Origin: Klebsormidium nitens
Taxonomy: Eukaryota > Plantae > Klebsormidiophyceae
Direction: 5' to 3'
DNA: 64,000 nucleotides
Assembly: GCA_000708835.1 (NCBI GenBank)
Contig: DF236954.1
Coordinates: forward strand, 1-64,000
Shown in pieces: positions 6,693-42,764 of this stretch. Within the stretch, counting starts at the first letter, position 1. Each line of letters opens with the position of its first letter. A program made the position numbers and the translations under genes. The notes below the pieces were generated by a model. That model saw only the letters and a program-made list of their open reading frames with translations, was not told the DNA's origin and searched no databases.

Positions 6693-6860
6693 TTGCTGGA
6701 ATAATGAGGATTTCATCAGAAACCTTACCCCCCGACAAATTGTTGCCTTTCAGTGGCCAGAAAGGTGCCCACCAGATTGGCGCCAATCAACGCACTTGTT
6801 TGGCGTTAGAAGGGCACCAATGGTGCCTTCAGCGATTTGAAATTCTCATTATTCCAGCAA
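6693..6860. repeat. Fold-back element with 23-bp inverted repeat arms
   Basis: 6693-6715 TTGCTGGAATAATGAGGATTTCA pairs with 6838-6860 TGAAATTCTCATTATTCCAGCAA (22/23); 122-nt spacer containing small hairpins. Confidence 0.8.
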
Positions 6861-6888
6861 CTTGCGTACTCTGGTGCAGTCAAAAGCG

Positions 6889-7062
6889 TGGAGCTGGCGG
6901 GACTCGAACCCGCATCTCTCAGACGCGGCCCATCCGGGCGGTGCTCGGAGCCTCATTCTGGAGGCCCCGGCAGGGACTTGGCCACTCGCGCGGGGCGAGG
7001 ACCTTTTGCCCCTAGGCATATCAGCCCTTGTCTTGGCGCTCTACCAATTGAGCTACAGCCCC
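6889..7062 (-). ncRNA. tRNA-Ala-like structured RNA gene, copy 1 (174 nt; anticodon loop replaced by a multi-hairpin insert)
   Basis: Minus strand: GGGGCTG-TA-GCTC-AATTGGTA-GAGC-G-CCAAGAC ... GTCTGAG-AGAT-GCGGG-TTCGAGT-CCCGC-CAGCTCC-A. Acceptor stem with G3:U70, intact D and T arms, A and B boxes. CGC then TTTT follows the 3' end; TATA-like TTTATATA about 40-48 nt upstream. Confidence 0.85.
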
Positions 7063-8971
7063 TCTTCCATACGTGCGGTGTTTTGAGGATAAGGTGTCCC
7101 CATATATAAACAGCGCCAATTGTCACTCGATGATCTGTGGGCCGAGCTTGTGTGACTTGAGAACCGTTGATCGAGCTGGGCAAGGACATTGACGATCCGA
7201 TGGTGCAATCGATAGAAACCATCAGAAGCAGTCTCTAAGCCCGGACAGTCCGTGACGAGGACCAAAATGCTCAATGAGCTGGACTTCTCAAAGCTAGAGC
7301 GAAGCCTGCACAGAGGATCGATTCATTGCAGGATGTCGAAGGCTAGAGGAGCGCTCTGTGACAAAATTATGGCCCAGCAGCATAGATTGGTCTGCTTGCC
7401 GGATACCACTCATGAACTGCCTTTCCGTGAAATATGGAGCTTTTATTGCTTATCTCTGGTAGTGGACCTTACAAATCATGCGAACGGAGAAGAGATTGAA
7501 GAGATTCGATATTGCTGTGCTCTGATTGCTTAGACCGTTTGGAATTATATGTTCCAATGATCCATCGAGCATCGAGGAGCTCGTCAAATACTCCGCTTGT
7601 TCCATGAGTGTTGGTGTCGAAGTGACAGTCTGCACGGATGCTCCAATATTGCAAGCATCCATAAATTAGATGCTAAACTAGGGTTGATCTAGAAACGCGC
7701 ACTCCTGCAAGACCAGCGAAAGCAGAATTCGGCGCCATCCTCGCATAAGGCGTTCGCAATGATGTGGCCGTGTACGAACCGTATGTATGCACCCACATGA
7801 TCAACGCTTGAAATGAGCGAGAAAAAAAGAGCAACATCTTCCACATATCAGAACTGGACAGGCTGGCATGCCACATGCACCCCGCGGTGCATATGTTTTC
7901 TAGCTTAGTAGAGCATGCACATTGACCGACTAGAGCTGCATGACATAATTGGCGGGATGCATCAGGACATCTCATGAGCCGTTCGCATTAACCCTGGCAC
8001 TTTCAGAGCAGGCTAGCTCACCAGCCGGTCTGCTCGACAACTAGTCTACAGAACTGTTGACAATTACCGCAGTCACGGCCGGGCAGATTGCTCATGCATC
8101 GATCCAAAAGCAGGAAACCATGCGCGAGTCCACAAAGACTATTGCATTTCACTAACTTGCAACCTTGCCGTCTTTGACCAATCCGCATCTGTACAGTATC
8201 CGTAGGGCGCTGTTTTCATCCGACAAACTTTTTCTCGATAAACTTGGCCCATCCCGAGCTCCTAACTTACATATTCGATCTTCCAACAAAACTAGCCTGT
8301 CAGTCTTGCTGGTTGTATCACTCTACGACTTCCGAGCCCTTCGTATCTTGCATAAGCAGGTTTGTTGAACACGGCTCCTCGCACTGATCCTATCAAGCTC
8401 CTTCTTTCAAACCCTTAAATATGATTGCATTGTCGCTCATCGAGAAGACTACGTTTCGTGAACCATATCTGCTGAGCTATATCTGAGCAACGGTCAAAGG
8501 CACATGTTTGCACTAAGCTTCGGGAAACAAGAGTTGTCGAACATTGGGCTTAAGTGCCGCCACCGGTCCGTCCGCCTGTACGGCAACAAAGCAGGGCTCT
8601 GACATCGAAGGACCCGACAAAAGCTAATGCTGAGAGTGTGACAAATGCATGCGCTTCAATTGTGGCGAAAGCATTCTGGTGTCTGCCTGGTTGAAAAATC
8701 CATCTCTGTGTTGGACCTTTGCCGAAAAAATGGACGGAGGCGGGGTCGAATCCAAGCAGATTGCTTCATTGGTCCAGGTATGCACATTTACACCGTTGAA
8801 AAGTAAGCTCAGATGACAAGATTCATACTAAAGGACGAGGAAATTAACCCTTGGATGCCAAGAATCTGACCATTGACGACGATAAGATACAACAAAGTGA
8901 TGGAAACCAGAGGAAACGTGAACGCCGACGCTTAACAAAAAAGGCCAACTCGTTCCAGCTAAAAGAACTTT

Positions 8972-11900: not shown

Positions 11901-13161
11901 ACCTTTGTGGGTAGCAGTCCTTGCAGCGAGTTGAAAGCAGTTGGCTGAAAGGGCGTCGTCAAGACTCTCGCCATTCCAAAGGTGTTGCGGAAGAGCTTTC
12001 AGAGTCAAACAATCTTGTGGAGTTTTGAACGAGAAAAGCTAGGCTGGCTGCTATAGCGGTCCTCCGAATGCGGTCCTCAGATGCTGTTTTGCGTCAAAAA
12101 GGAAACCCACTCGAGGGACTGCAGACACACCTTCCAAGAGTATTGATGTTTTCTGTTGCATTCAGCATCAGCCTCTGCGAAGCCCCTTGGAGTTGCAATG
12201 GTTCCACCCGGTACCGCTTCTAGGAGGTCCAGCCACTCTTCCAGAGCTTCCAGCTTCGAGCTCCTGTCGGCCTGCAAGGGACACAGACTGGTTTGAGATT
12301 GGCGGCGAGAGCCTCTGTATGGAAACGCACGCCCAGGAGAAACTCATCTGCTCAAGAGGTTGCACAAGCTTTAGTACCTGGATATTTGGTTGAATACAGT
12401 CCTTGGTTAGATTCATTCTCCCTTGAATCGAGCAGCAAGTGACCACAATTGCGTTGTGCTTTCTTGGATATTGATGCTCCAGATATCAAGAACGGACGCC
12501 AGATGAGTCCTTCCTCAAATCCCAGTAGAACCGCAATACCGACCTGATAAAGGAGCTGTGGCTCCTCTTCTTCTTGGTAAACCCACGCGGTACTCTCGTC
12601 TCCAGCGAGAACCTTTCCCTCGCCTGTTGCTGCGCCAAAGTCGTCGTCGTCCATCTCCGCGCCATCATCATCGTCGTCCATCTCTGCGCCAGCATCGGGG
12701 TCGTCCATTTCTGCGCCAGCATCGGGGTTGTCCATTTCTGCGTCGTAATTGGGGTCGTCCACCTCACCCCTCTCCGGCTCCTCTTTTCGCTCAATGACCG
12801 CTTCGCCGTCTTTTGTGGGCAACCTTGTGCACGCATTCTCCTCCCAGGGGGGTCCTCCAAAACCCAGAACAGGGCTGTTGGGCGCCAGCTCTCCTAGAAT
12901 GGTCCGCTGCAGAGTGGGAAAGGGTGTTCCGCGCAGCGCCAACTTGTGGATGGGGGCCATCTCCTCGTACTGGTGCGGCTGAGGGATGACGGGTGAAGAC
13001 AGAGCCTTCTGAACCGGCTCAGCTTTCCTGCACGTGTGGGAATGACAGGTATCACTAGACGTTTCAGACCTTTGGCAGATTGATGTATGCAGAGAGCAGG
13101 GATCTAGATTGTACTTGCAATCGCCAAGAGAATTTGTAAAGAACCTGGAAGGTTTGGCCAT
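8972..13161 (-). CDS. Divergent PP4R3/SMEK (PSY2)-like protein phosphatase 4 regulatory subunit, multi-exon; 5' end and last exon uncertain
   Basis: Exons with canonical splice sites at 9142-9394, 10056-10231, 10886-11167 and 11700-~12010 join in frame: ...VRACALLMYCVRHHGTRLRPFVFRHGALEAVARLAGHAEPRVAMIAVEFLRACLLRHDAHY... This follows the SMK-1 pattern ICELLCFCV.HH.YRIK...E.YLV.AAVRF.R..L...D..Y. Upstream exons at ~12130-12270 and 12545-13161 carry an acidic repeat. Confidence 0.7.
12646..12765 (-). repeat. Coding 27-bp tandem repeat (about 4.5 units) encoding DAGAEMDD(P/D)
   Basis: On the plus strand GTYGTCCA recurs at 12646, 12673, 12700, 12727 and 12754 (period 27). Confidence 0.9.
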
Positions 13162-16300: not shown

Positions 16301-17601
16301 ACCGTCCTGGTCTTCCACGTACTCCTGCTGTCCGCAATTCGGACAAGCGGGCCAGAATCCGCTTGCCACGAAAGCGAAGCAGAGTGACGCCACACGAAGA
16401 GATAGAAGAGTATATTTTATCGAACTCCGCAGGAAATAAACATGCCTGCAAGCGGATCGATGATCATGAATTCGAATGAATGGGCATCAGGCCCATCATG
16501 AAAATGTCAACGACTTTAGCATGCGCAATATCTTCCAATTGCTTTTGGTACTTTAACACTGGACATTGCAATTTGAGACATAGCTCAGCCACTTATATGT
16601 CCGAGTGCCGTGAAATCTCCTCATTCAGGGTTGCACTATGCTTGTCGTCTTCATATCAATGAAAAGCTGCAAACCCTTAATGCATCGCTCATTCGATCCA
16701 AAAGATGATTAAGCCTGAAATCATACGGCCACGTTGCGGTCAATTGGCTCCAGGGTTTGTGTTCATGCATCCGGCCAGTCATCTTATGCAGCTCTCGGAC
16801 GAGGATGTTAATTCGCAGTGATAAGCCGCACGGATGCCAGTCTTGCACGAGATTGAGCCATCCGCTTTTGACTCCAAAATAATATGTTGAAGATTCGTTC
16901 ACCTGGGTCCACTGCAGCCATGATTGGGCCGCGTGCATGCGAGAACATCCATACCCTTCCCATCAAAGAGGCAAAACTGCCCTTACGATGTCTCAGCATC
17001 TAATTCGCCGTCCCCTTCTTGGTTTTGTAGATAGCCACTTTCACAAATATAAAAGCGGACCGTCACGGTCACTTCCATACTTTCGCACAGAAACAAGCCA
17101 GTCAAATATATAATATTTAAAAATCTCGATACGCGGTGTGATGATTGAACGGGAAACACATTTCAAGCGTCCTATCATCGCATGTCTTTAATCTTCAATC
17201 TTATTCTGGGTCGCATTCTCCCGTTTATTGAGTACGAAGGCCTCTTACTTCATAACAAGGTTCTGATCATAGTTTGGCAAATATGCTAGTGGCAATGACT
17301 CATTCACACAACGCTCGTGCTAGAACAAGAAACCTTTTTTGGTAAGCAATGCTTCTAACCCCCGTGGAATGGGCTTTGCCCAGCTCCAAGACAATCCAAA
17401 GTGCAAGTTGACGTTCTGATCGTCTCACGAACCTCTGGGCTTCAAAATTTTCCTCAGATCGGACTATCGAAGCTTCGGTGACCGTCCCCAGCTCGATCAA
17501 CGATTGTCGAATCGCGAAAGCATTTTGGCCCACACTCAATTCGAGGTTCCACTAGTGCTGCTTATATTTGGAGATATTGTGTACAATCGCACCTTTATAG
17601 C

Positions 17602-17838
17602 GGGGCTGTAGCTCAATCGGTAGAGCGCCAAGGCCCGAAAGAGGGTGATATCCCTCATGATCAGAGCTGGAAGCTCAGGGGTTACAATCCCAGGGGTGAT
17701 ATCCCTCAGGTTTACAAGATTAGGGGTGACATCCCCAAGGGGCGAAAGCTCCTCGTTGCCGGGGCCTCGATTGGGGCTCCGAGCTTCGCCCAGATGGGCC
17801 GGGTCTGAGAGATGCGGGTTCGAGTCCCGCCAGCTCCA
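17602..17838 (+). ncRNA. tRNA-Ala-like structured RNA gene, copy 2 (237 nt; expanded hairpin insert)
   Basis: GGGGCTG-TA-GCTC-AATCGGTA-GAGC-G-CCAAGGCCC ... GGGTCTGAG-AGAT-GCGGG-TTCGAGT-CCCGC-CAGCTCC-A. The 5' 32 nt differ from copy 1 at one base and the 3' ~36 nt are identical. TATA-like TTATATT about 35-40 nt upstream; first T4 about 29 nt downstream. Confidence 0.85.
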
Positions 17839-18838
17839 CGCTGTTTGGTCCATCAACAAGCAGGAACTTTTAGAATCGAACGAGAGTCTGCTGAGAGTGA
17901 CAGCTGTTCACGCGGTGTTCTGAGCAGCTTCAACTTTTCCACGAAGTCCCCGCGATCGCTGGGAGCTGCAAGGAAATAAGAAGAGCTTCGTGCTGAACGT
18001 GCCTCGTTTGAGAGGTCGAGCGTACTCCAACGAAGGGCTGGAGGGGATGAATGTACAGAAAATTGGTTGAAACCGAACAGGGTTACCCTCTTCGTCGCTG
18101 AGCTCATGACATATAGCTCAATTGCTCACACGTTTACGATCCAGAACAAACTGACATGCCCAATAATGGAGCTGCCTTTGCTTCTAGCGAGCCAGGAGCG
18201 TCTGCTCCGGGCAGAGCCTTGTGGGCAGACCGACCTGTTCATCCACATGACGGTCAAGGACTTTTGCTGGTCCGTTTTCCGAACAGACGGATAAACTACG
18301 CGTCATGTTGTTGCATCCTTGAACAGGACCCGAGGAACTGCTTTGACATCACCGAAGCGATTTGGAGACGGCTCACTCTCCGAGGGGAAACTCTCGTTAG
18401 GAATCCGCTCGGGGCACCGCTCAAACTTGCAATTCCGGGCAGCCGCAATCACCTAGAAATAAGACGAAAAGAGCACGCCGCCCTGAAAAGCATACTTCAA
18501 GGGAATAGTTGAAGGTGAAATTAACAGCGTATTGGTGATACAGGCTTTTCGACCCGGCAGCTTGTTTTAACAGGTTTGAAGTAAAAGTAAGAGTAACACC
18601 AGGCAGTGTTAAAGTGCGAGATGTGAAATCTGGTTTTTGACTGGCGCTCTTGGCACGAAGACTTCTTCCCCGCTTTGCAGAGCCTGGTACCTTTACTGGC
18701 TTGTGCAGGATGACAAGCTGCGACGGCCGAAGATCCGCGTGATGCACGCAGATCACCATTTAATTCTGCGTGCCTTACGGGGTCCGCAGACCTTGAGGGA
18801 GGCGCTAGCGATCGAGGCGGGGACGAATGAAAGAGAAA

Positions 18839-19889: not shown

Positions 19890-21149
19890 TTAGGTTGAGG
19901 CTTTCCAGGTTCTGCGTTGCTTGGAAGAGTGACTGAAGTGTGCTGGATGTGTCAGACCCCTCTCTTCAAACGCCAGATCAACACATAGATCTTTCAGTTT
20001 GGAGAGCACCTTAAAAGGACTTGACGATTGAAGGCTTGAAAAGAAAAGAAGACCTAGATCCAGTTTCTCGATGCCCGGTGGCAACTGGGACACAAAGCTT
20101 CTGACAGGAAGAGGCGTCATTAGTCCGTCAAGCGTCACAGTCAGATTCTGCAAGGTAGGGCACTGACGGAGAATAGGGGCCACAATCTCCGTCCAGCTAT
20201 CCCAAGCGGAATCCCAGGCCGCGAAGGTCTTCAGGTGACTGCAAGGCTGGACAAATGTCACCGGGTCCTCCAGACAACTGACTGTAAGCTCTAGCTCTTG
20301 CAGTGCAGGGGCTTCCAATCGAAGAGAGTCGCAATTAACGGCCAGCCTGTGCAGGCTGGGTGCTTGAACATCAAGAGAAATGAAGTACGCTCCTAAAGTT
20401 TGAAGATCGAGAGATCTTAGCGTCTCTGACTTGACGAAGCACGTATTAACCTCCGGATCTGGATTACCAGTTCCAGAGTCATCAGACTTCAATTCGACGT
20501 GTACATTTGTCCAAAGAGTCTCAAGGAAACGGCACCTCTGCAGCAGATTGTGGACCGCTGCGACAGACAGGTTTCCATTGACGAATCGCACGTGCCTTAC
20601 TTCACTGATGGGAGCCGCTGTTAGCACTTCGATAGTGCCACGAGAGGTACTGAAATGGTTGAGACCTGAAACCGAGAGGAGGATGTCGATGATGTTTCTA
20701 CTTGGTTGAGGGTCATCTACCACAAAGTCGGCGCATGAAGGACCACCCCAAATTGATCCCGGTTCGTCCTGCATGCAGTATACTGAGACCACTTTTGGCA
20801 GGCGCTTGAGCAGCGAGTCACTTGAGATGAGACTGTGCGGAATATCCTCCTGCTTTGCGGCGATCAACAGTTCCAGTTTCTTACAAGAGAAACTCTGATG
20901 GTTCACAAAAACCAGGAACCCTTGCGCCTCTGCTGCGCTTCTCAGGGGCCAAACCAGGCTTTCTACCTGGTGCGCCAACCCCTCAAACCGCCGGCAAACG
21001 AGGAGCGCTTGAATAAAATCCTTTGCATGTTCGACGCTCGGTAACCAGCTCCAAAGTTGCAAGCGGCTTGGGCCTGCAACTTTTCCCAGTACGCGAATGA
21101 TCAGATCATCCGGAAGCAGATCAAAAGGGTCGGCTTCGATCAGAGCCAT
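19890..21149 (-). CDS. F-box protein with LRR-like C-terminal region (apparently single exon, about 419 aa)
   Basis: Uninterrupted ORF. N-terminal PFDLLPDDLIIRVLGKV...ALLVCRRF F-box motif; LxxLxL repeats (LRSLDL, LHRLAV, LQELEL, LQNLTV). Confidence 0.75.
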   Translation of the reverse strand: MALIEADPFDLLPDDLIIRVLGKVAGPSRLQLWSWLPSVEHAKDFIQALLVCRRFEGLAHQVESLVWPLRSAAEAQGFLVFVNHQSFSCKKLELLIAAKQEDIPHSLISSDSLLKRLPKVVSVYCMQDEPGSIWGGPSCADFVVDDPQPSRNIIDILLSVSGLNHFSTSRGTIEVLTAAPISEVRHVRFVNGNLSVAAVHNLLQRCRFLETLWTNVHVELKSDDSGTGNPDPEVNTCFVKSETLRSLDLQTLGAYFISLDVQAPSLHRLAVNCDSLRLEAPALQELELTVSCLEDPVTFVQPCSHLKTFAAWDSAWDSWTEIVAPILRQCPTLQNLTVTLDGLMTPLPVRSFVSQLPPGIEKLDLGLLFFSSLQSSSPFKVLSKLKDLCVDLAFEERGLTHPAHFSHSSKQRRTWKAST

Positions 21150-21759
21150 CAAAGGAGCCTGCTAAGTTTCCAATCGCCAAGAACCAAGCTGAACTTAAGG
21201 CTTATTTTCGAACCTGCTTGTCGGGAGTGACATTGGCGCTCTCTATGAAGTACCCCCAATTCAAATGAAGGCTTCGTAATATCTCTAGCTACCAGTGCGC
21301 TTCTGGCCCTGATCAACAGCGAGAAACCTTGAGAAAATGGAATCACCTGAAGCTCACAGGTGCTCAAAACGCGTGTCTTTCTTGGCTTGCTGGATACACC
21401 CCTGGAAGTTATTAAAACTGGCCGCCTGCATCTGAATTCTCATCCAGATCATCGTTTGCACGTTTCTGGCTGGCCCGTACGGTCGCTGGCTCTCATAAGT
21501 TAGTCGCGCGCCCGTCGCACACGCGGCCGCATGGCAGCATAGCGCCTGAGACTCAGGCCATGTTCGCAGGGTTTAACTGGGTTTTACCTTTGCGGTTGCG
21601 CGCGTATTATCACAGCCTAGTGACTGCGACAGTGAGGCGGCCGCGTAGGCGAGCCGCTCTGCGCAAGTCTTCAGAGGCCGACTTGCTTCAGAATAGTTCA
21701 TAAGCTGGCATCCCGCGGGGCCGCTGAGGCGCTAGCCTAACTACAGTCACCTTTAAAAA

Positions 21760-37400: not shown

Positions 37401-40400
37401 GCAAAGATTTGTTTGTGGAGGTTGATGTTCCAAGGTTGTTGGAAGCCTGCTCAATTCTCTTAACAAGCACTGTTTTCGGTTGAGAAGATGGTTGTTTATC
37501 AGACTTACCATTCTTTGACATGCAGATGAGATAGTGTCTGAACACAAAAAGAAAGGCCAAGAGACTGCATATCCTCGAGTACACCTCTTTTTTTGAGACT
37601 GCCGAAGGCTGTCTCTGTCAGTCATTGTTAGCAGGGATTGTTCCAACCGGCAGGAGTTAATACTGGGTGTGTTCACACAGAAGTCGCAGCCTTATTAAGG
37701 TGCCAGTTTTGGTTTGAAAACAGGGACGGATGTGGGATTGCTAGTATTTTTTCATAAGTGAAATTCTTGACGAGAAGAAAATAAAACTAACAAAACGGCA
37801 GTGGCGTTTCTTGCAGGCAACTACCAGTACCCCCCCGACAGCCAGGGCCTCCCCTACAACAAGCAGCACATGCAGCCCATTGCTCCCAACCGCATGCACA
37901 TGCACGGCGGCATGTACAACCAGCCAAAGGGACACCGCGGGCGCTCCTACAATCCGGGCAGGGTTCACCCTGATTACCCTGTGGAGCAAGTCGACCCCCA
38001 TATGGCACGCGCACATCAGGAAATGCTCGCTCAGCAGCAGCAGCAGCAGGTGAGCTGCGGGCCACTTCGTCCTCCTCCGTTTTGGTTTGCTCTTTTCCGT
38101 GTGTGCTTGAAGTCTCATCTGACTTTCAGAAGTTTTGATTCTTGCCCTTGAGTTGGTTGGCTGCCGTCATTGATCTTTGTTGTGGAAGTGTACATGCGTT
38201 GGTTTGTTGTGCTTCAGATATCTTTTCCGCGATTTGAAGTTTCCAAACAGATGCTTCGCGGCGTAAGTAAGAGTACCTGGGGGAAAGTCACATATTCGAT
38301 ATTGGATCTGGTCTTGAACTGATTTGTTCTCTTACCATCTGAAAGTGATGGTAATCATCACTTTCATCTTTAAAACCTTAGTTGTGAACCCCGAAAATGA
38401 TTGCTGAAGGGCGATTGCCAATCCGTTTGCAGATACGGGGCCAGGCCCCCCAGAACATGCAGCGCGGCGCATACCGTGGCCAGCGCGACGGCGGCCATGG
38501 CATTGATAAGCAATTTGACGGCATGCGCCTCGACCAAGGGGGCCCCAAGAGCAGCTCGGGACTTGACGTGCACGCTCCGGAGTACGGGGGCGGCAAGAAG
38601 TACTCCCCTCCTAACCAGGTTAGTAATCAAGGGTCATCTTATTCCCTCACATTGTCCTTTCTTTTGTCATCGCATCTCTTAGTTGCCACCCCGTTTCTGA
38701 GAATGGAAGCTTTCATCTTCGTTTTTGAGCACTGCCGGGTGTAACCCCGATCTTCTCTTGTCTGCTGAATCCCGATCCAAGCATAAAGGTACATAGATGC
38801 AAATGCTGATTTCTGCTCCCCTTTTTTCATCCAGGAGTTCCTCAACTTCTCCCCCGGGAACGAGGAGTATCTGAGCCCGTCGGGTGCGGGCTCCCGCGTT
38901 CCCCCCTCCGAGAACGCCAAGCGTGACGGCTCGAGGAGCGTTCTTGGTTGCATCGGAGACGGGCGCAGGGGCAGTTCCGGCACGGAGTCGGAGGGAGGGG
39001 GAGACTTGCAGGCCCCCAGCGCCTCGCGTCCGGGCACCTCTCAAAAGGGGGGGTCTGGAATGAACAGGACCGGGGGGGAGGAAAAAGGTGGGGAAGGGTA
39101 CGAGAAGGCGGCCAAGATGAGCTGGGCGAGCGTGATGGCGAACGGCATGGCCAAGGACGATGAGAAGAAGAGCGACTCGGAGGACGGGGAGCCGAACCTG
39201 GAGGACAAGAACTGGGTGGAGAAGACGATCTCCAAGCAACAGAGGGAGGTGAGAGTTGAGATTAAGTGGAGGCGCTTTGGGGCTAAGGTTTTTTCTAAAG
39301 ATCTGGTGGAGTCGGTCCCAGGGAATTAGTCTGACAGGCGTTCAGTGACTGCAAATCCTGGCAGGTGAAGCTTTCAAGTGCCGAAGGTTTCTGACGGGTT
39401 GGCTGAAAGTGCATGGTACTCTATGCGGGTTTCCTGGCCTGGATACGAGATCCCCCGACTTGGTGTACTGAAGTTGGAAAGTGCAGAGATGTGTTAACGA
39501 AACGCAGCCTTATGTGTTGGCGACAATCGAAGGCTCACACACATGGCGTCCAACGAAAGCGCTATCTCTTCTGGTCCTCGCTCTACTTAGCTCCCGTCTT
39601 CAAGTTCTTTCACTAAGCGTTACTTCTGTGCTGCAGAATGAGCAGCTCCAGGCAGCGGCTATCAAGCTGGCGCAGACAGTGGTCAACTACGAGATGCGCC
39701 AAGGAAAGGTGAGATGCTTGGCCGGGCAGGAGGGTTCCCCATCACCCGACAAGGGCACAGCTCGTTGTGGCCTTCTGTGAAGTTGCCTGATGCTGGCTTT
39801 ACCATGTTGCGACCAGATTTTACAGTCTGTACGAACATGCTTGGCTTTACGAACATGTTTCGATTTTCAAAAGAATCAGGGCGGAAGGGACTCCGATATT
39901 TTGTGTCTAGCTCTGAAAGTCAGCCTTTCTCAACGGGATGCTTCGGAAGAGGCTATTGGTTCGGGAAAGGGGTTTGATGAGGTTGAGATTATAGTTACTC
40001 ACAGCCCTTTCGTGATCGGTGGAACTGTTGGATTCGGAGCCAGCAGTCGACCCGGCAGTAATCACATTGGCTGAATCCAAATAAGACCGAGGCCCTGAGT
40101 GTTATCAAAGCCCTCATTCTAGGCGGTTGACAAGGTCAACTTGGTGGAGAGGTTGGAGCTGCAAGCCCTGCGCTTGCACCTACTCTTGAACATACATCCC
40201 GATCCCACTGCTTCGGACCGATCTCTGAACCCCCCGTTTCTTGATACAGGCGGCCGGCGCGGACAAGCCGAGTGTGGAGATGGAGCTGCAGGGGCTGAAC
40301 GGGACCCACTTCGCCAAGGGCGCGCCAATCTGCGTCCACTTTCTGCAGCACGGGCAGTGCACGTGGAAGAGCCGCAGCTGCCCCAACAGTGACACGCACC

Positions 40401-40477
40401 ACTGCGGGCGGTGCGGGGGGCCTCACGGGACCAAGGCTCACTCGTACCTGCTCAAAGTCCTGGACCAAATGCGCTAG
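34410..40477 (+). CDS. Multi-exon low-complexity G/P/H/Q/Y-rich protein with a C-terminal Cys/His zinc-finger module; start codon unresolved
   Basis: GC-rich exons with GT-AG boundaries at ~34622-34678, ~35870-36007, ~36643-37168, ~37817-38049, ~38432-38617, ~38835-39247, ~39638-39709 and 40250-40477. Contains poly-Q and PPGY-rich segments and ends GAPICVHFLQHGQCTWKSRSCPNSDTHHCGRCGGPHGTKAH...MR*. Confidence 0.7.
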
Positions 40478-42764
40478 GGGCAGGGGGATACGGGGTTGGG
40501 GGACAGGTTTGATGGGCGCTTTTCGAAGTGCGGGCAGAGGAGGGTTTTGGGAGGGTTGCGATGTCTGTGGGTAGAGAGTGGACCGACGTGAGGGAGGCGT
40601 GCGGTTACAGCGGTATGGAGCGGGTTTACAGAGCGACTAAAATCGAGAACGAGGAGTGTGCGGAACTGGAAGTGTGTTTGAGAGAGAGTCTCGGGGGGCC
40701 CGCGACGGAGCGGATGAGAGGCGGCGCAAGTTGCGGGGCGGTCACGAGAAGAAGCTGAACGAAAGAAGCGATTGTGAAGCGACACGGGAGCCACTGGCGG
40801 GAGTTGGGTGCTGTGTTTGTAGAAAGCCTGCGGGCGGGCAGGCGGGTAGGCTGTGGGTGGCGACGGTTCTTTTATCGGGGGGCTTTTTGTTAGGGACAGG
40901 AGATTGCGTCTGTCGTGAGACCAGGGGGGCCTAGTCGGAGTGAGGCTACGGGGTACCGAATCGGCGAACGCGACGCTCGGAGGGTCTGTTCAGCGGCCAG
41001 GAGGATCACAGATGCGGGAGGAGTTGCGCGCGCGCCCGCAGGCATTCTCGTCCGAAGGGGTGCCCGTTTTACGACAGCGCATGGTTGGAGGGGGGTGTTT
41101 CAGCAGGCGATGTGAAACAGGGGGTGCTTTGAGGACAGCCAACAGAAATTGAACGAAGGAATGGGCAGTCGGCGTTCGATTGTCTTCGGGTGAGCGAATC
41201 AGCGGGCGGGGGGGGAGCCTGCTGTAGCTCCGGCGGACTGTCGGGATTCGGCAGCCGGTGTCCGGGGCTCAGGTTTCAGTTGGGCGGACACGCAGCACAA
41301 TTTTGGTAAGGAAGAGAGAAGATTCAGGGGCGGCAGAACAGGCAGGGAGGCAGGGGTGAATGCCGGTACAAGCACGTTGTACATACTGTACTCTGCGAGC
41401 ATGCTGCGGCAGAAACTGGCGTGCCCCTGCCCGGGTTTGATTTGGACCGTCAAAAGAGAGACGCCGGCTCAGTAGCAATACACGCGTTTGGTTTAGCTAG
41501 AACATTAGCCAGCTTACAGCCCCAGGCCAGTTGGGCTTCCGTCGTAGTGTCGGAGCCAGGCCTCGAATTTCCCCAAGCAGCCTGTGAGATGAGCCCTTGC
41601 ATGGTTGGCGGCACCCAACCTGGGGTTCGGTACTCGTCTTCCTAGGACCGGTTCAGAACCTGACGATGTGCAAGAGTGCTTCGGGCCCCAAATCAGCCAA
41701 CAGCGGAACGCTGGTTGCAAGGTCGAGTAGGACGTTAGGCTCGTCAAGCTATCTATGCTAAGAAGTTGATCAGCAAAGGCGATGAAGATAGGTAAAACTC
41801 CTGCATTTAGGACGATAACGGTTGCTATGGGGCATCTTCTGCTCTTGAATTCCATATGCAAGCACGGTTGAGATATAGTAGTCTGGATTTGCGGCGATCC
41901 TTTTGCTTTGAGTCAACTTGAAGTTTGACTATGGTACTAAAATTTATGCTCTTATTGTACCGTCTGAAGGCACTTCAGCTTAGTTTGAGGCACGGCAGCT
42001 TGCGCCGCGTGACCAGCATGGCATGAGAATGTTGATTGCGACGTGATTGCATCGCAGAATGCTGGTTGCACATGCCCAGCGGCGGCGCGCCACACAAAAG
42101 AATGTGACTCTGTTCTGTCTGGCCCTAGCTGCCACATGTATATCTGATTGCTGGCATGACTTGGATCGACGGTGTGCTCAAGCTCGGGCCGCCACTGCAT
42201 ATGTGTGTTGTCTTGCAATGGTGATTTGTAATGTGCTACAACGGTATACGAGCGCAAATGCGCTGCATGCACCACTCAACCAATTGCATTCAATGATCAT
42301 GCATCCATACCTGGCCGGCATGCATATTGTTTGGCCGATTAATGTCTAAAGCAGAGCATGTCTGCGCAAGAATGCGCGCGCACACATACATGTGATGTAG
42401 TCCAAGAGACATTAAAAGACAATGTTCGATGCATGTGCGTCAGTTTATGTAGTCGATTTGCATCATACAATGCGCGCTCACCAGGCTACATTGTACTACC
42501 TAGTATCGCATTATGATAGCGACGTCCTGCCCTCTCCGAACCTTGAAGTCGAAAGCTCGCTCAAAACAGCTTTCCCACTTTTGAACAACCAGCATAAACA
42601 CACTAGGTGTAACATGCAAATGACGTCTGAAGGCCTCAGCTGATGTGTAGCAGCAGTCAGGCGCGTGTCTGTACAATCAAAGTATTTGGTTATATTAGAT
42701 CAATACATGAGAGCCTATCACCCCGCAACGTTCTCATTGACGCACCAACGCAGTAAAGCTTGGG

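Follow-up and report, generated by a model that had tools for sequence, protein, structure and literature searches.

A tRNA-Ala-shaped gene family without an anticodon arm on a Klebsormidium nitens contig

The fold of transfer RNA (tRNA) is reused in RNAs that do not decode. Rodent BC1 RNA is derived from tRNA-Ala, the tRNA-like domain of transfer-messenger RNA (tmRNA) lacks a D stem, and in engineered tRNA scaffolds a foreign RNA replaces the anticodon stem-loop, the tRNA body giving processing and stability. Here we describe two genes, copies A and B, that are members of a tRNA-Ala-shaped gene family without an anticodon arm. Both lie in the first 64,000 nucleotides (nt) of contig DF236954.1 of Klebsormidium nitens; this 64-kb stretch, called the window below, is what our pattern searches of the source genome covered. 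Copy A (174 nt) occupies 6889-7062 on the minus strand, as located by an Rfam tRNA match and by reading of the sequence, and copy B (237 nt) occupies 17602-17838 on the plus strand, as located by its end patterns and a fold that keeps the acceptor, D, and T arms. An earlier annotation of the window made from the letters alone, referred to here as the original prediction, had placed two copies at these same positions and strands.

Copies A and B share with canonical tRNA-Ala (RF00005) the acceptor with G3:U70 and discriminator A73, the D and T arms, the bases of the tertiary contacts, and the A and B boxes, and their 5' 28 nt are letter-identical to those of many bacterial tRNA-Ala genes. They differ from it in having hairpins of 107 to 170 nt instead of the 7-nt loop with its anticodon, two fixed mismatches in the 27-31/39-43 helix, a 4-nt variable loop, and a conserved external promoter-like region. 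Engineered tRNA scaffolds have the same architecture; those, however, are artificial constructs, whereas here it would belong to a natural, evolving gene family. BC1, the gammaherpesvirus TMERs (PMC4337559), mascRNA, and the tRNA-like sequence of Arabidopsis GUT15 (PMC6152437) resemble copies A and B in that they depend on RNA polymerase III (Pol III) or on RNase P and RNase Z, reuse the tRNA shape, and do not decode. In BC1 and the TMERs, however, the non-tRNA part comes after the tRNA-like part, whereas in copies A and B it sits inside the anticodon arm, with both ends of the tRNA retained. For their part, mascRNA and GUT15 are cut from RNA polymerase II transcripts. In the literature that we searched for tRNA-like genes of this design, no description of such a family was found; PlantRNA 2.0 records "tRNA-like" sequences of unknown function in these genomes (10.1101/2021.12.21.473619). 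The two copies look like an undescribed kind among the tRNA-derived small RNAs, being neither tmRNA nor an ordinary intron-containing tRNA. We read them, with even confidence, as belonging to a family of structured RNAs derived from tRNA-Ala and probably made by Pol III, with the tRNA body as their scaffold for processing and stability.

The tRNA-like body

Read directly, the acceptor stem of both copies is 7 bp long (GGGGCUG/CAGCUCC) and includes G3:U70, and the discriminator is A73. The D arm is GCUC-AAUYGGUA-GAGC, with a full 4-bp stem and an 8-nt loop, and the T arm is GCGGG-UUCGAGU-CCCGC, with a perfect B box inside (GGTTCGAGTCC). A9 and G26 are found in both copies, as are U8, A14, G18G19, and U54U55C56, which provide for the contacts of the tRNA elbow, and A15 lies opposite U48, provided that the variable loop is taken as the 4-nt AGAU. 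The alanine-type acceptor, the two arms, the A15:U48 pair, and the Pol III A and B boxes had all been named in the original prediction and were recovered by direct reading. The CCA end is not genome-encoded in either copy.

The 5' tRNA part of copy A (7032-7062, minus strand) comprises the 5' strand of the acceptor, the D arm with the A box, and the 27-31 segment CCAAG, and it differs from that of copy B in one base of the D loop. The 3' tRNA part (6889-6924, minus strand), made up of GUCUGAG, the 4-nt variable loop, the T arm with the B box, the acceptor's 3' strand, and A73, is identical to that of copy B in 36 of 36 bases, so that the tRNA-like parts agree at 66 of 67 positions. A 25-nt pattern from the 3' end and a 28-nt pattern from the 5' end each occurred twice in the window, against 0.00 expected, which excludes chance. 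The Rfam tRNA model (RF00005) matched copy A with 44.3 bits (gathering threshold, 29) by skipping 117 nt at the anticodon arm, and scored copy B at 20.4 bits, below that threshold. ARAGORN at default settings gave no tRNA and no tmRNA anywhere in the window.

The absence of a canonical anticodon arm, which had also been predicted, was evident in both copies. Copies A and B have the same two mismatches, C.A and A.G, inside the 27-31/39-43 helix, CCAAG/CUGAG, which extends into the insert through AC/GU in copy A and GCCCG/CGGGU in copy B. We enumerated every excision of one or two introns, at any position, that would build a 17-nt anticodon arm by joining a prefix of the insert, one internal piece, and a suffix, demanding at least four of the five stem pairs, U33, and a purine at 37. 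By this enumeration and by ARAGORN in intron mode, a 5-bp anticodon stem with a 7-nt loop bearing U33, an anticodon, and a purine at 37 is absent from both copies. What replaces the anticodon loop is an insert, put at roughly 105 to 170 nt in the original prediction and found to be 107 nt long in copy A (6925-7031, minus strand) and 170 nt long in copy B (17633-17802, plus strand).

The window was read as nuclear and eukaryotic on the basis of its few long open reading frames (ORFs), a weak Pre-SET match under the Pfam cutoff, and the weakly F-box/LRR-like homologues of a neighboring ORF. The host genome is probably the nuclear genome of a eukaryote, a streptophyte alga.

Hairpins of the insert and their conservation

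In the folds of both RNAs the acceptor and D arms were retained with a chain of hairpins between them, the z-scores being -2.5 for copy A and -3.96 for copy B. Four modules are common to the two copies. The module Ha, a 4-bp stem with a UGAYAU loop, occurs once in copy A (GGGC-UGAUAU-GCCU, 7014-7027, minus strand; motif search and fold) and three times in copy B, and relative to the third such hairpin of copy B the one in copy A has one fully compensated pair. The module Hb joins AGGGGC with GYYCCU. In copy B it is a simple hairpin, AGGGGC-GAAA-GCUCCU, and in the minimum free energy fold of copy A (6972-7013, minus strand) the helix AGGGGC/GUCCCU encloses an additional 30-nt hairpin. The module Hc, an 11-bp helix with a bulged A, is common to the two copies (6943-6971, minus strand, in copy A; consensus fold), and the sole change in its helix is from U-A to U-G. 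The module Hd, GCCC-RGAU-GGGC, is likewise common (GCCC-GGAU-GGGC at 6928-6939, minus strand, in copy A) and varies in its loop bases only. In copy B the fold and the alignment place Hb, Hc, and Hd, which together form the shared 3' domain of the insert, at 17738-17799 (plus strand). All the shared hairpins listed in the original prediction were thus found, with a correction to one of them: in copy A the better partner of the AGGGGC strand is GUCCCU, which lies 30 nt downstream, and not the GGUCCU next to it.

A 30-nt unit with two small hairpins is present 2.3 times in tandem in the 5' part of the copy B insert (17674-17742, plus strand; Tandem Repeats Finder and direct repeats). The length of the insert therefore varies by tandem duplication, a mode of growth that had not been remarked before. 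Wherever the UGAYAU hairpin had an exact match in the window, the site lay inside copy A or copy B, and the idea that this module is a dispersed repeat was rejected within the window on that ground. No Rfam family covers the insert, in agreement with the earlier view that it could not be placed in a known family. A pattern specific to Hc had no match in viral contigs or in bacterial or archaeal genomes, and a 36-nt pattern from the 3' end had none in viral contigs. Two further candidate identities were discarded. The UGAUAU loops do not have the core bases of a hammerhead or a C/D box, as judged by eye, and gave no Rfam match; telomerase RNA, which the context of the upstream boxes described below brings to mind, was dismissed as no stretch resembling a telomere template was seen by eye in either RNA.

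The shared 3' domain of the insert is about 85% identical between copies A and B, and the changes within it are distributed unevenly: one of the 30 paired positions is affected, against 7 of the 20 unpaired ones (Fisher p = 0.005). Taken together, the helices of Ha, Hb, Hc, and Hd contain six changes in 50 paired bases. Pairing is kept in all six, as the original prediction had proposed for the differences between the hairpins; they consist of one double change from C-G to G-C and five G-C/G-U or U-A/U-G changes. An orthologue of copy A in a second, related organism differs from it by U131C in the Hd loop, U87C, C89U, and the deletion of one G from the G run of Hc, and both U87C and C89U still allow pairing in Hb, with G54 and G52, respectively. 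A third sample contained a near-identical copy of copy A. These few sequences provide modest, consistent evidence that selection acts on the structure of the insert.

Upstream region, family members, and transcripts

About 125 bp upstream of each copy are conserved in blocks, a feature not remarked in the original prediction. The 3-kb flanks of copies A and B are otherwise unrelated, and a segmental duplication as the source of the upstream similarity was rejected for that reason. The blocks follow one another in the order CCCAGCTCGATCAACG, GGCCCACA, TCGAG, and then a TATA box, which is TTTATATA in copy A and CTTATATT in copy B. The second block resembles the upstream sequence element (USE) of plant genes. 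Counting the USE as an 11-nt box, the USE-like box and the TATA box lie 22 nt apart in copy A (7100-7143, minus strand) and 23 nt apart in copy B (17528-17567, plus strand), as found by alignment and pattern search; the pattern GCCCACA followed after 20 to 30 nt by TTATAT occurred in the window at these two loci only, against 0.00 expected. The first block is a 16-mer that is identical at both loci (7165-7180, minus strand, for copy A; 17487-17502, plus strand, for copy B). Together with the bases that precede it, this 16-mer bears a loose likeness to the T arm and acceptor 3' end of a tRNA in decay (...CCAGCTC.A), a hint that the unit that was duplicated had its start, at one time, in the 3' end of a tRNA-like gene lying before it.

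In Arabidopsis promoters of small nuclear RNA (snRNA) genes of the Pol III type, the USE and the TATA box are spaced 23 to 24 bp apart (PMC8287931). The gap of 22 to 23 nt between the candidate boxes of copies A and B is near that value. Plant type-3 Pol III genes (U6, 7SL, MRP, and telomerase RNA; PMC8287931) are like copies A and B in having a box with a CCCACA core, a TATA box at a Pol III-like spacing, and a T-run terminator, but they have no internal boxes of the tRNA type, which are present here. A candidate Pol III terminator, a TTTT run, lies 3 nt past A73 in copy A (6882-6885, minus strand). In copy B the first TTTT run lies 30 nt past A73 (17868-17871, plus strand), and a TTT is found at 17844-17846 (+6). 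From these internal and external elements we infer that copies A and B are probably transcribed by Pol III.

A pair of inverted repeat arms, 23 nt long, 96% complementary, and 122 nt apart, is located 29 nt downstream of copy A (6693-6715 and 6838-6860). It may be a hairpin or an element resembling a miniature inverted-repeat transposable element (MITE); no equivalent adjoins copy B.

The size of the family and its expression were gauged from assembled contigs of DNA and RNA runs. In the DNA assembly of a relative, the 3' 34 nt are shared by contigs with at least 9 different preceding and at least 12 different following sequences, and about 7 to 8 contigs share the 5' 30 nt. Several contigs join both tRNA-like ends around other cores, of 80, 97, and 134 letters. 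Contig depths and counts put the copy number in the relative at roughly 8 loci with the 5' end and at least 12 with the 3' end, the summed depths being possibly inflated by high-copy organellar contigs. Many contigs with the 3' 34 nt amid different neighbors were also present in DNA assemblies of the source organism. In a metagenome scan, the 5' 28-nt pattern matched at least 120 contigs; every one of them had a plain 73-nt bacterial tRNA-Ala gene, without any insert.

One member of the family was found as RNA. A 214-nt contig of RNA run X10 is a paralogue with both tRNA-like ends and 134 other letters between them, preceded by a leader of about 12 nt, followed by a 9-nt trailer, and unspliced. 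Such a contig is consistent with a primary transcript that is short, discrete, and left unspliced. In the same run, the flanks of copy B had zero depth. Abundant contigs of a different kind, about 590 to 870 nt long and with depths of up to 309, were seen in RNA runs X7, X10, and X12. These match 6889-6922 and 17805-17838 and consist of 11 to 17 nt, a copy of the 34-nt tRNA-like 3' half with 2 mismatches, and then hundreds of nucleotides of downstream sequence. The letters in front of the 3' half form no canonical anticodon arm, and the contigs could represent an mRNA that starts in a tRNA-like element or an organellar transcript.

Proposed function, rival explanations, and surroundings

If the family is one of structured RNAs carried on a tRNA body, its members would be made and used as follows. 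By analogy with Arabidopsis U6, we take transcription to start about 10 to 18 nt upstream of G1; it would end at the T run, the A and B boxes being aided by the USE-like and TATA boxes. The acceptor, D, and T arms would give a normal tRNA elbow, and trimming by RNase P and RNase Z, CCA addition, and tRNA-like stabilization and export would therefore be possible. The structured hairpin domain would stay unspliced in place of the anticodon loop, its 3' half (Hb, Hc, and Hd) held by selection for pairing and its 5' half lengthening and shortening through duplication of the short hairpins with the UGAYAU loop. In this way the tRNA body would be a naturally occurring scaffold on which the hairpin domain is offered to a partner, most likely a protein. 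Charging by alanyl-tRNA synthetase (AlaRS) is plausible, because G3:U70 and A73 are retained. A stronger version, in which the RNAs are matured, CCA-bearing, and alanine-charged and act as anticodon-less donors or as ribosome-associated adaptors, with the hairpin domain recruiting a partner, seems to us a long shot.

Several observations weigh against a functional family of this kind. The comparison comprises just two full sequences and sparse orthologue differences, and the covariation amounts to one double change and several G-C/G-U transitions. The variable, tandemly duplicating 5' half of the insert resembles weakly constrained sequence, and the divergence of the orthologue, about 3% in the gene against about 5% upstream, is not clearly lower in the gene. 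Gene conversion between tRNA-like copies could leave the tRNA parts looking as if purifying selection had kept them; it cannot explain the common non-canonical junction CCAAG...GUCUGAG. The USE-like box fits the plant USE consensus in its CCCACA core alone, and its promoter role is a prediction. Copies A and B were absent from the RNA-run assemblies, including those of runs with the same species label, and the depth of the expressed paralogue contig was 2.7. This paralogue, moreover, seems to have G rather than U at position 70, and alanine identity may for that reason not be family-wide.

Some of these points also speak for the view that the copies are transcribed but functionless relics, a possibility that we consider doubtful without dismissing it. 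A tRNA-Ala would have lost its anticodon loop to an insertion or to a decayed intron and been duplicated a few times, the insert drifting as a minisatellite and the tRNA parts being kept by gene conversion with real tRNA-Ala genes. Neither copy has an anticodon, the 63-nt difference in insert length came about through duplication of the 30-nt unit, RNA evidence for copies A and B is low or absent, the gene of the orthologue is not clearly less diverged than its upstream sequence, and some streptophyte algae have thousands of tRNA-like sequences or pseudogenes according to PlantRNA 2.0 (10.1101/2021.12.21.473619). A canonical tRNA-Ala, however, could not have donated the CCAAG...GUCUGAG junction that is identical in both copies. 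The promoter-like blocks upstream are conserved whereas the neighboring sequence is not, substitutions avoid the paired bases and those in helices keep the pairing, and the locus is nearly unchanged in two further organisms or samples. That the genes are instead tRNA-derived mobile elements, such as a short interspersed element (SINE), a MITE, or part of an element like a terminal-repeat retrotransposon in miniature, and not cellular RNA genes, is improbable. The family is multicopy with variable cores, and the pair of 23-nt inverted repeats lies just downstream of copy A, but the copy number, to judge by contig depths and counts, seems to be in the tens, not thousands, and the conserved unit takes in the approximately 125 bp upstream of the transcript, which a retroposed Pol III transcript would not carry. 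A repeat search found neither target-site duplications nor terminal inverted repeats around either unit; there is no A-rich, simple-repeat, or LINE-like tail, the RNA ending in the tRNA acceptor followed by the T run; and the tRNA 3' end is complete, unlike that of SINE heads.

The two readings that assign the copies to a known class of RNA fare worse. One is an ordinary tRNA-Ala whose intron or introns are unusually long, lie at non-canonical positions, and are removed to leave a decoding tRNA. It would suit the Rfam match, in which the insert counts as extra sequence within the anticodon arm, and red and some green algae have tRNA introns that are non-canonical or multiple (PMC13578239; 10.1101/2021.12.21.473619). 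Most streptophyte algae, however, carry only canonical introns at 37/38, and a length of about 64 nt in Ostreococcus is already called unusually long (PMC13578239). In the enumeration, no excision of one or two introns from copy B yielded an arm with an NGC anticodon, copy A gave just contrived arms with four of five pairs that reuse the Hd loop, and no solution was common to both. ARAGORN allowing introns produced only forced Arg(CCG) models that cut the two copies differently and require long variable arms. The junction has no bulge-helix-bulge, the helix simply continuing in both folds, and the paralogue RNA contig retains its 134-letter insert. A spliced tRNA-Ala was rejected on the inconsistent ARAGORN models and the lack of a common excision, and we hold it to be very improbable. 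Least probable of all, in our judgment, is a nuclear, tmRNA-like, alanine-charged RNA that serves in ribosome rescue or tailing. Like tmRNA (RF00023), copies A and B have an alanine-type acceptor with G3:U70 and A73, a T arm, no anticodon, and a long helix that leaves the tRNA-like domain where the anticodon arm would be, and the Rfam tmRNA consensus can be aligned with their 3' end. The resemblance that the original prediction had noted there is therefore real, but it is not diagnostic, as bacterial tRNA-Ala is just as close: several of the at least 120 metagenomic tRNA-Ala genes have near-identical T arms and acceptor ends. The tmRNA-like architecture claimed in that prediction was not supported in any specific sense. 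Both copies have a full D arm, whereas tmRNA has none (PMC3985003). The ARAGORN tmRNA search detected nothing, and the Rfam tmRNA model gave 26.9 bits (threshold, 47) on the T arm and acceptor alone. Three-frame translation showed no frame or tag peptide common to the two inserts, and where a tag would sit, copy B is 63 nt longer than copy A. No series of pseudoknots was detected, and the genes are multicopy, with variable inserts, in a nuclear, intron-rich genome. A tmRNA identity was accordingly rejected for want of a common tag frame, for the presence of the D arm, and for the negative detectors.

Should the family prove to be functional in the sense that we favor, with a hairpin domain on a tRNA scaffold, a natural and complete tRNA body would serve as the chassis for a structured RNA nested in its anticodon arm, a design known from RNA engineering and, as a plant or algal gene family, undescribed in the literature searched. 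Internal promoter elements of the tRNA type and external ones of the snRNA type would then be combined in the green lineage. The retained acceptor raises the question of whether anticodon-less G3:U70 RNAs are charged with alanine in a eukaryote; if they did act as alanine donors, they would provide a eukaryote with an equivalent of alanine tailing, be it tmRNA-like or template-free, or with a dedicated carrier of alanine for non-ribosomal transfer. Loci of this kind are likely to be filed as pseudogenes or as "tRNA-like" by tRNA annotation pipelines.

The surroundings of the two genes were also inspected. An ORF of 420 amino acids (19890-21152, minus strand), 2 kb from copy B, has Logan homologues at 73%, 51%, and 40% identity with weak F-box/LRR Pfam matches, and it is probably a gene for an F-box LRR protein. 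The contigs of two homologues (73% and 51%), both from one Logan run, contained no tRNA-like gene, the closest of them stopping 1.3 kb beyond the homologue, before the place where a tRNA-like gene was expected. Between copies A and B, an ORF of 269 amino acids (12352-13161) had no homologue in the protein database; it contains a 27-nt tandem repeat of about 4.2 copies with 86% matches (12630-12765). Within the window, GC content is highest (0.579) in the segment from 40001 to 42000, where the GC skew is also strongest (+0.21).

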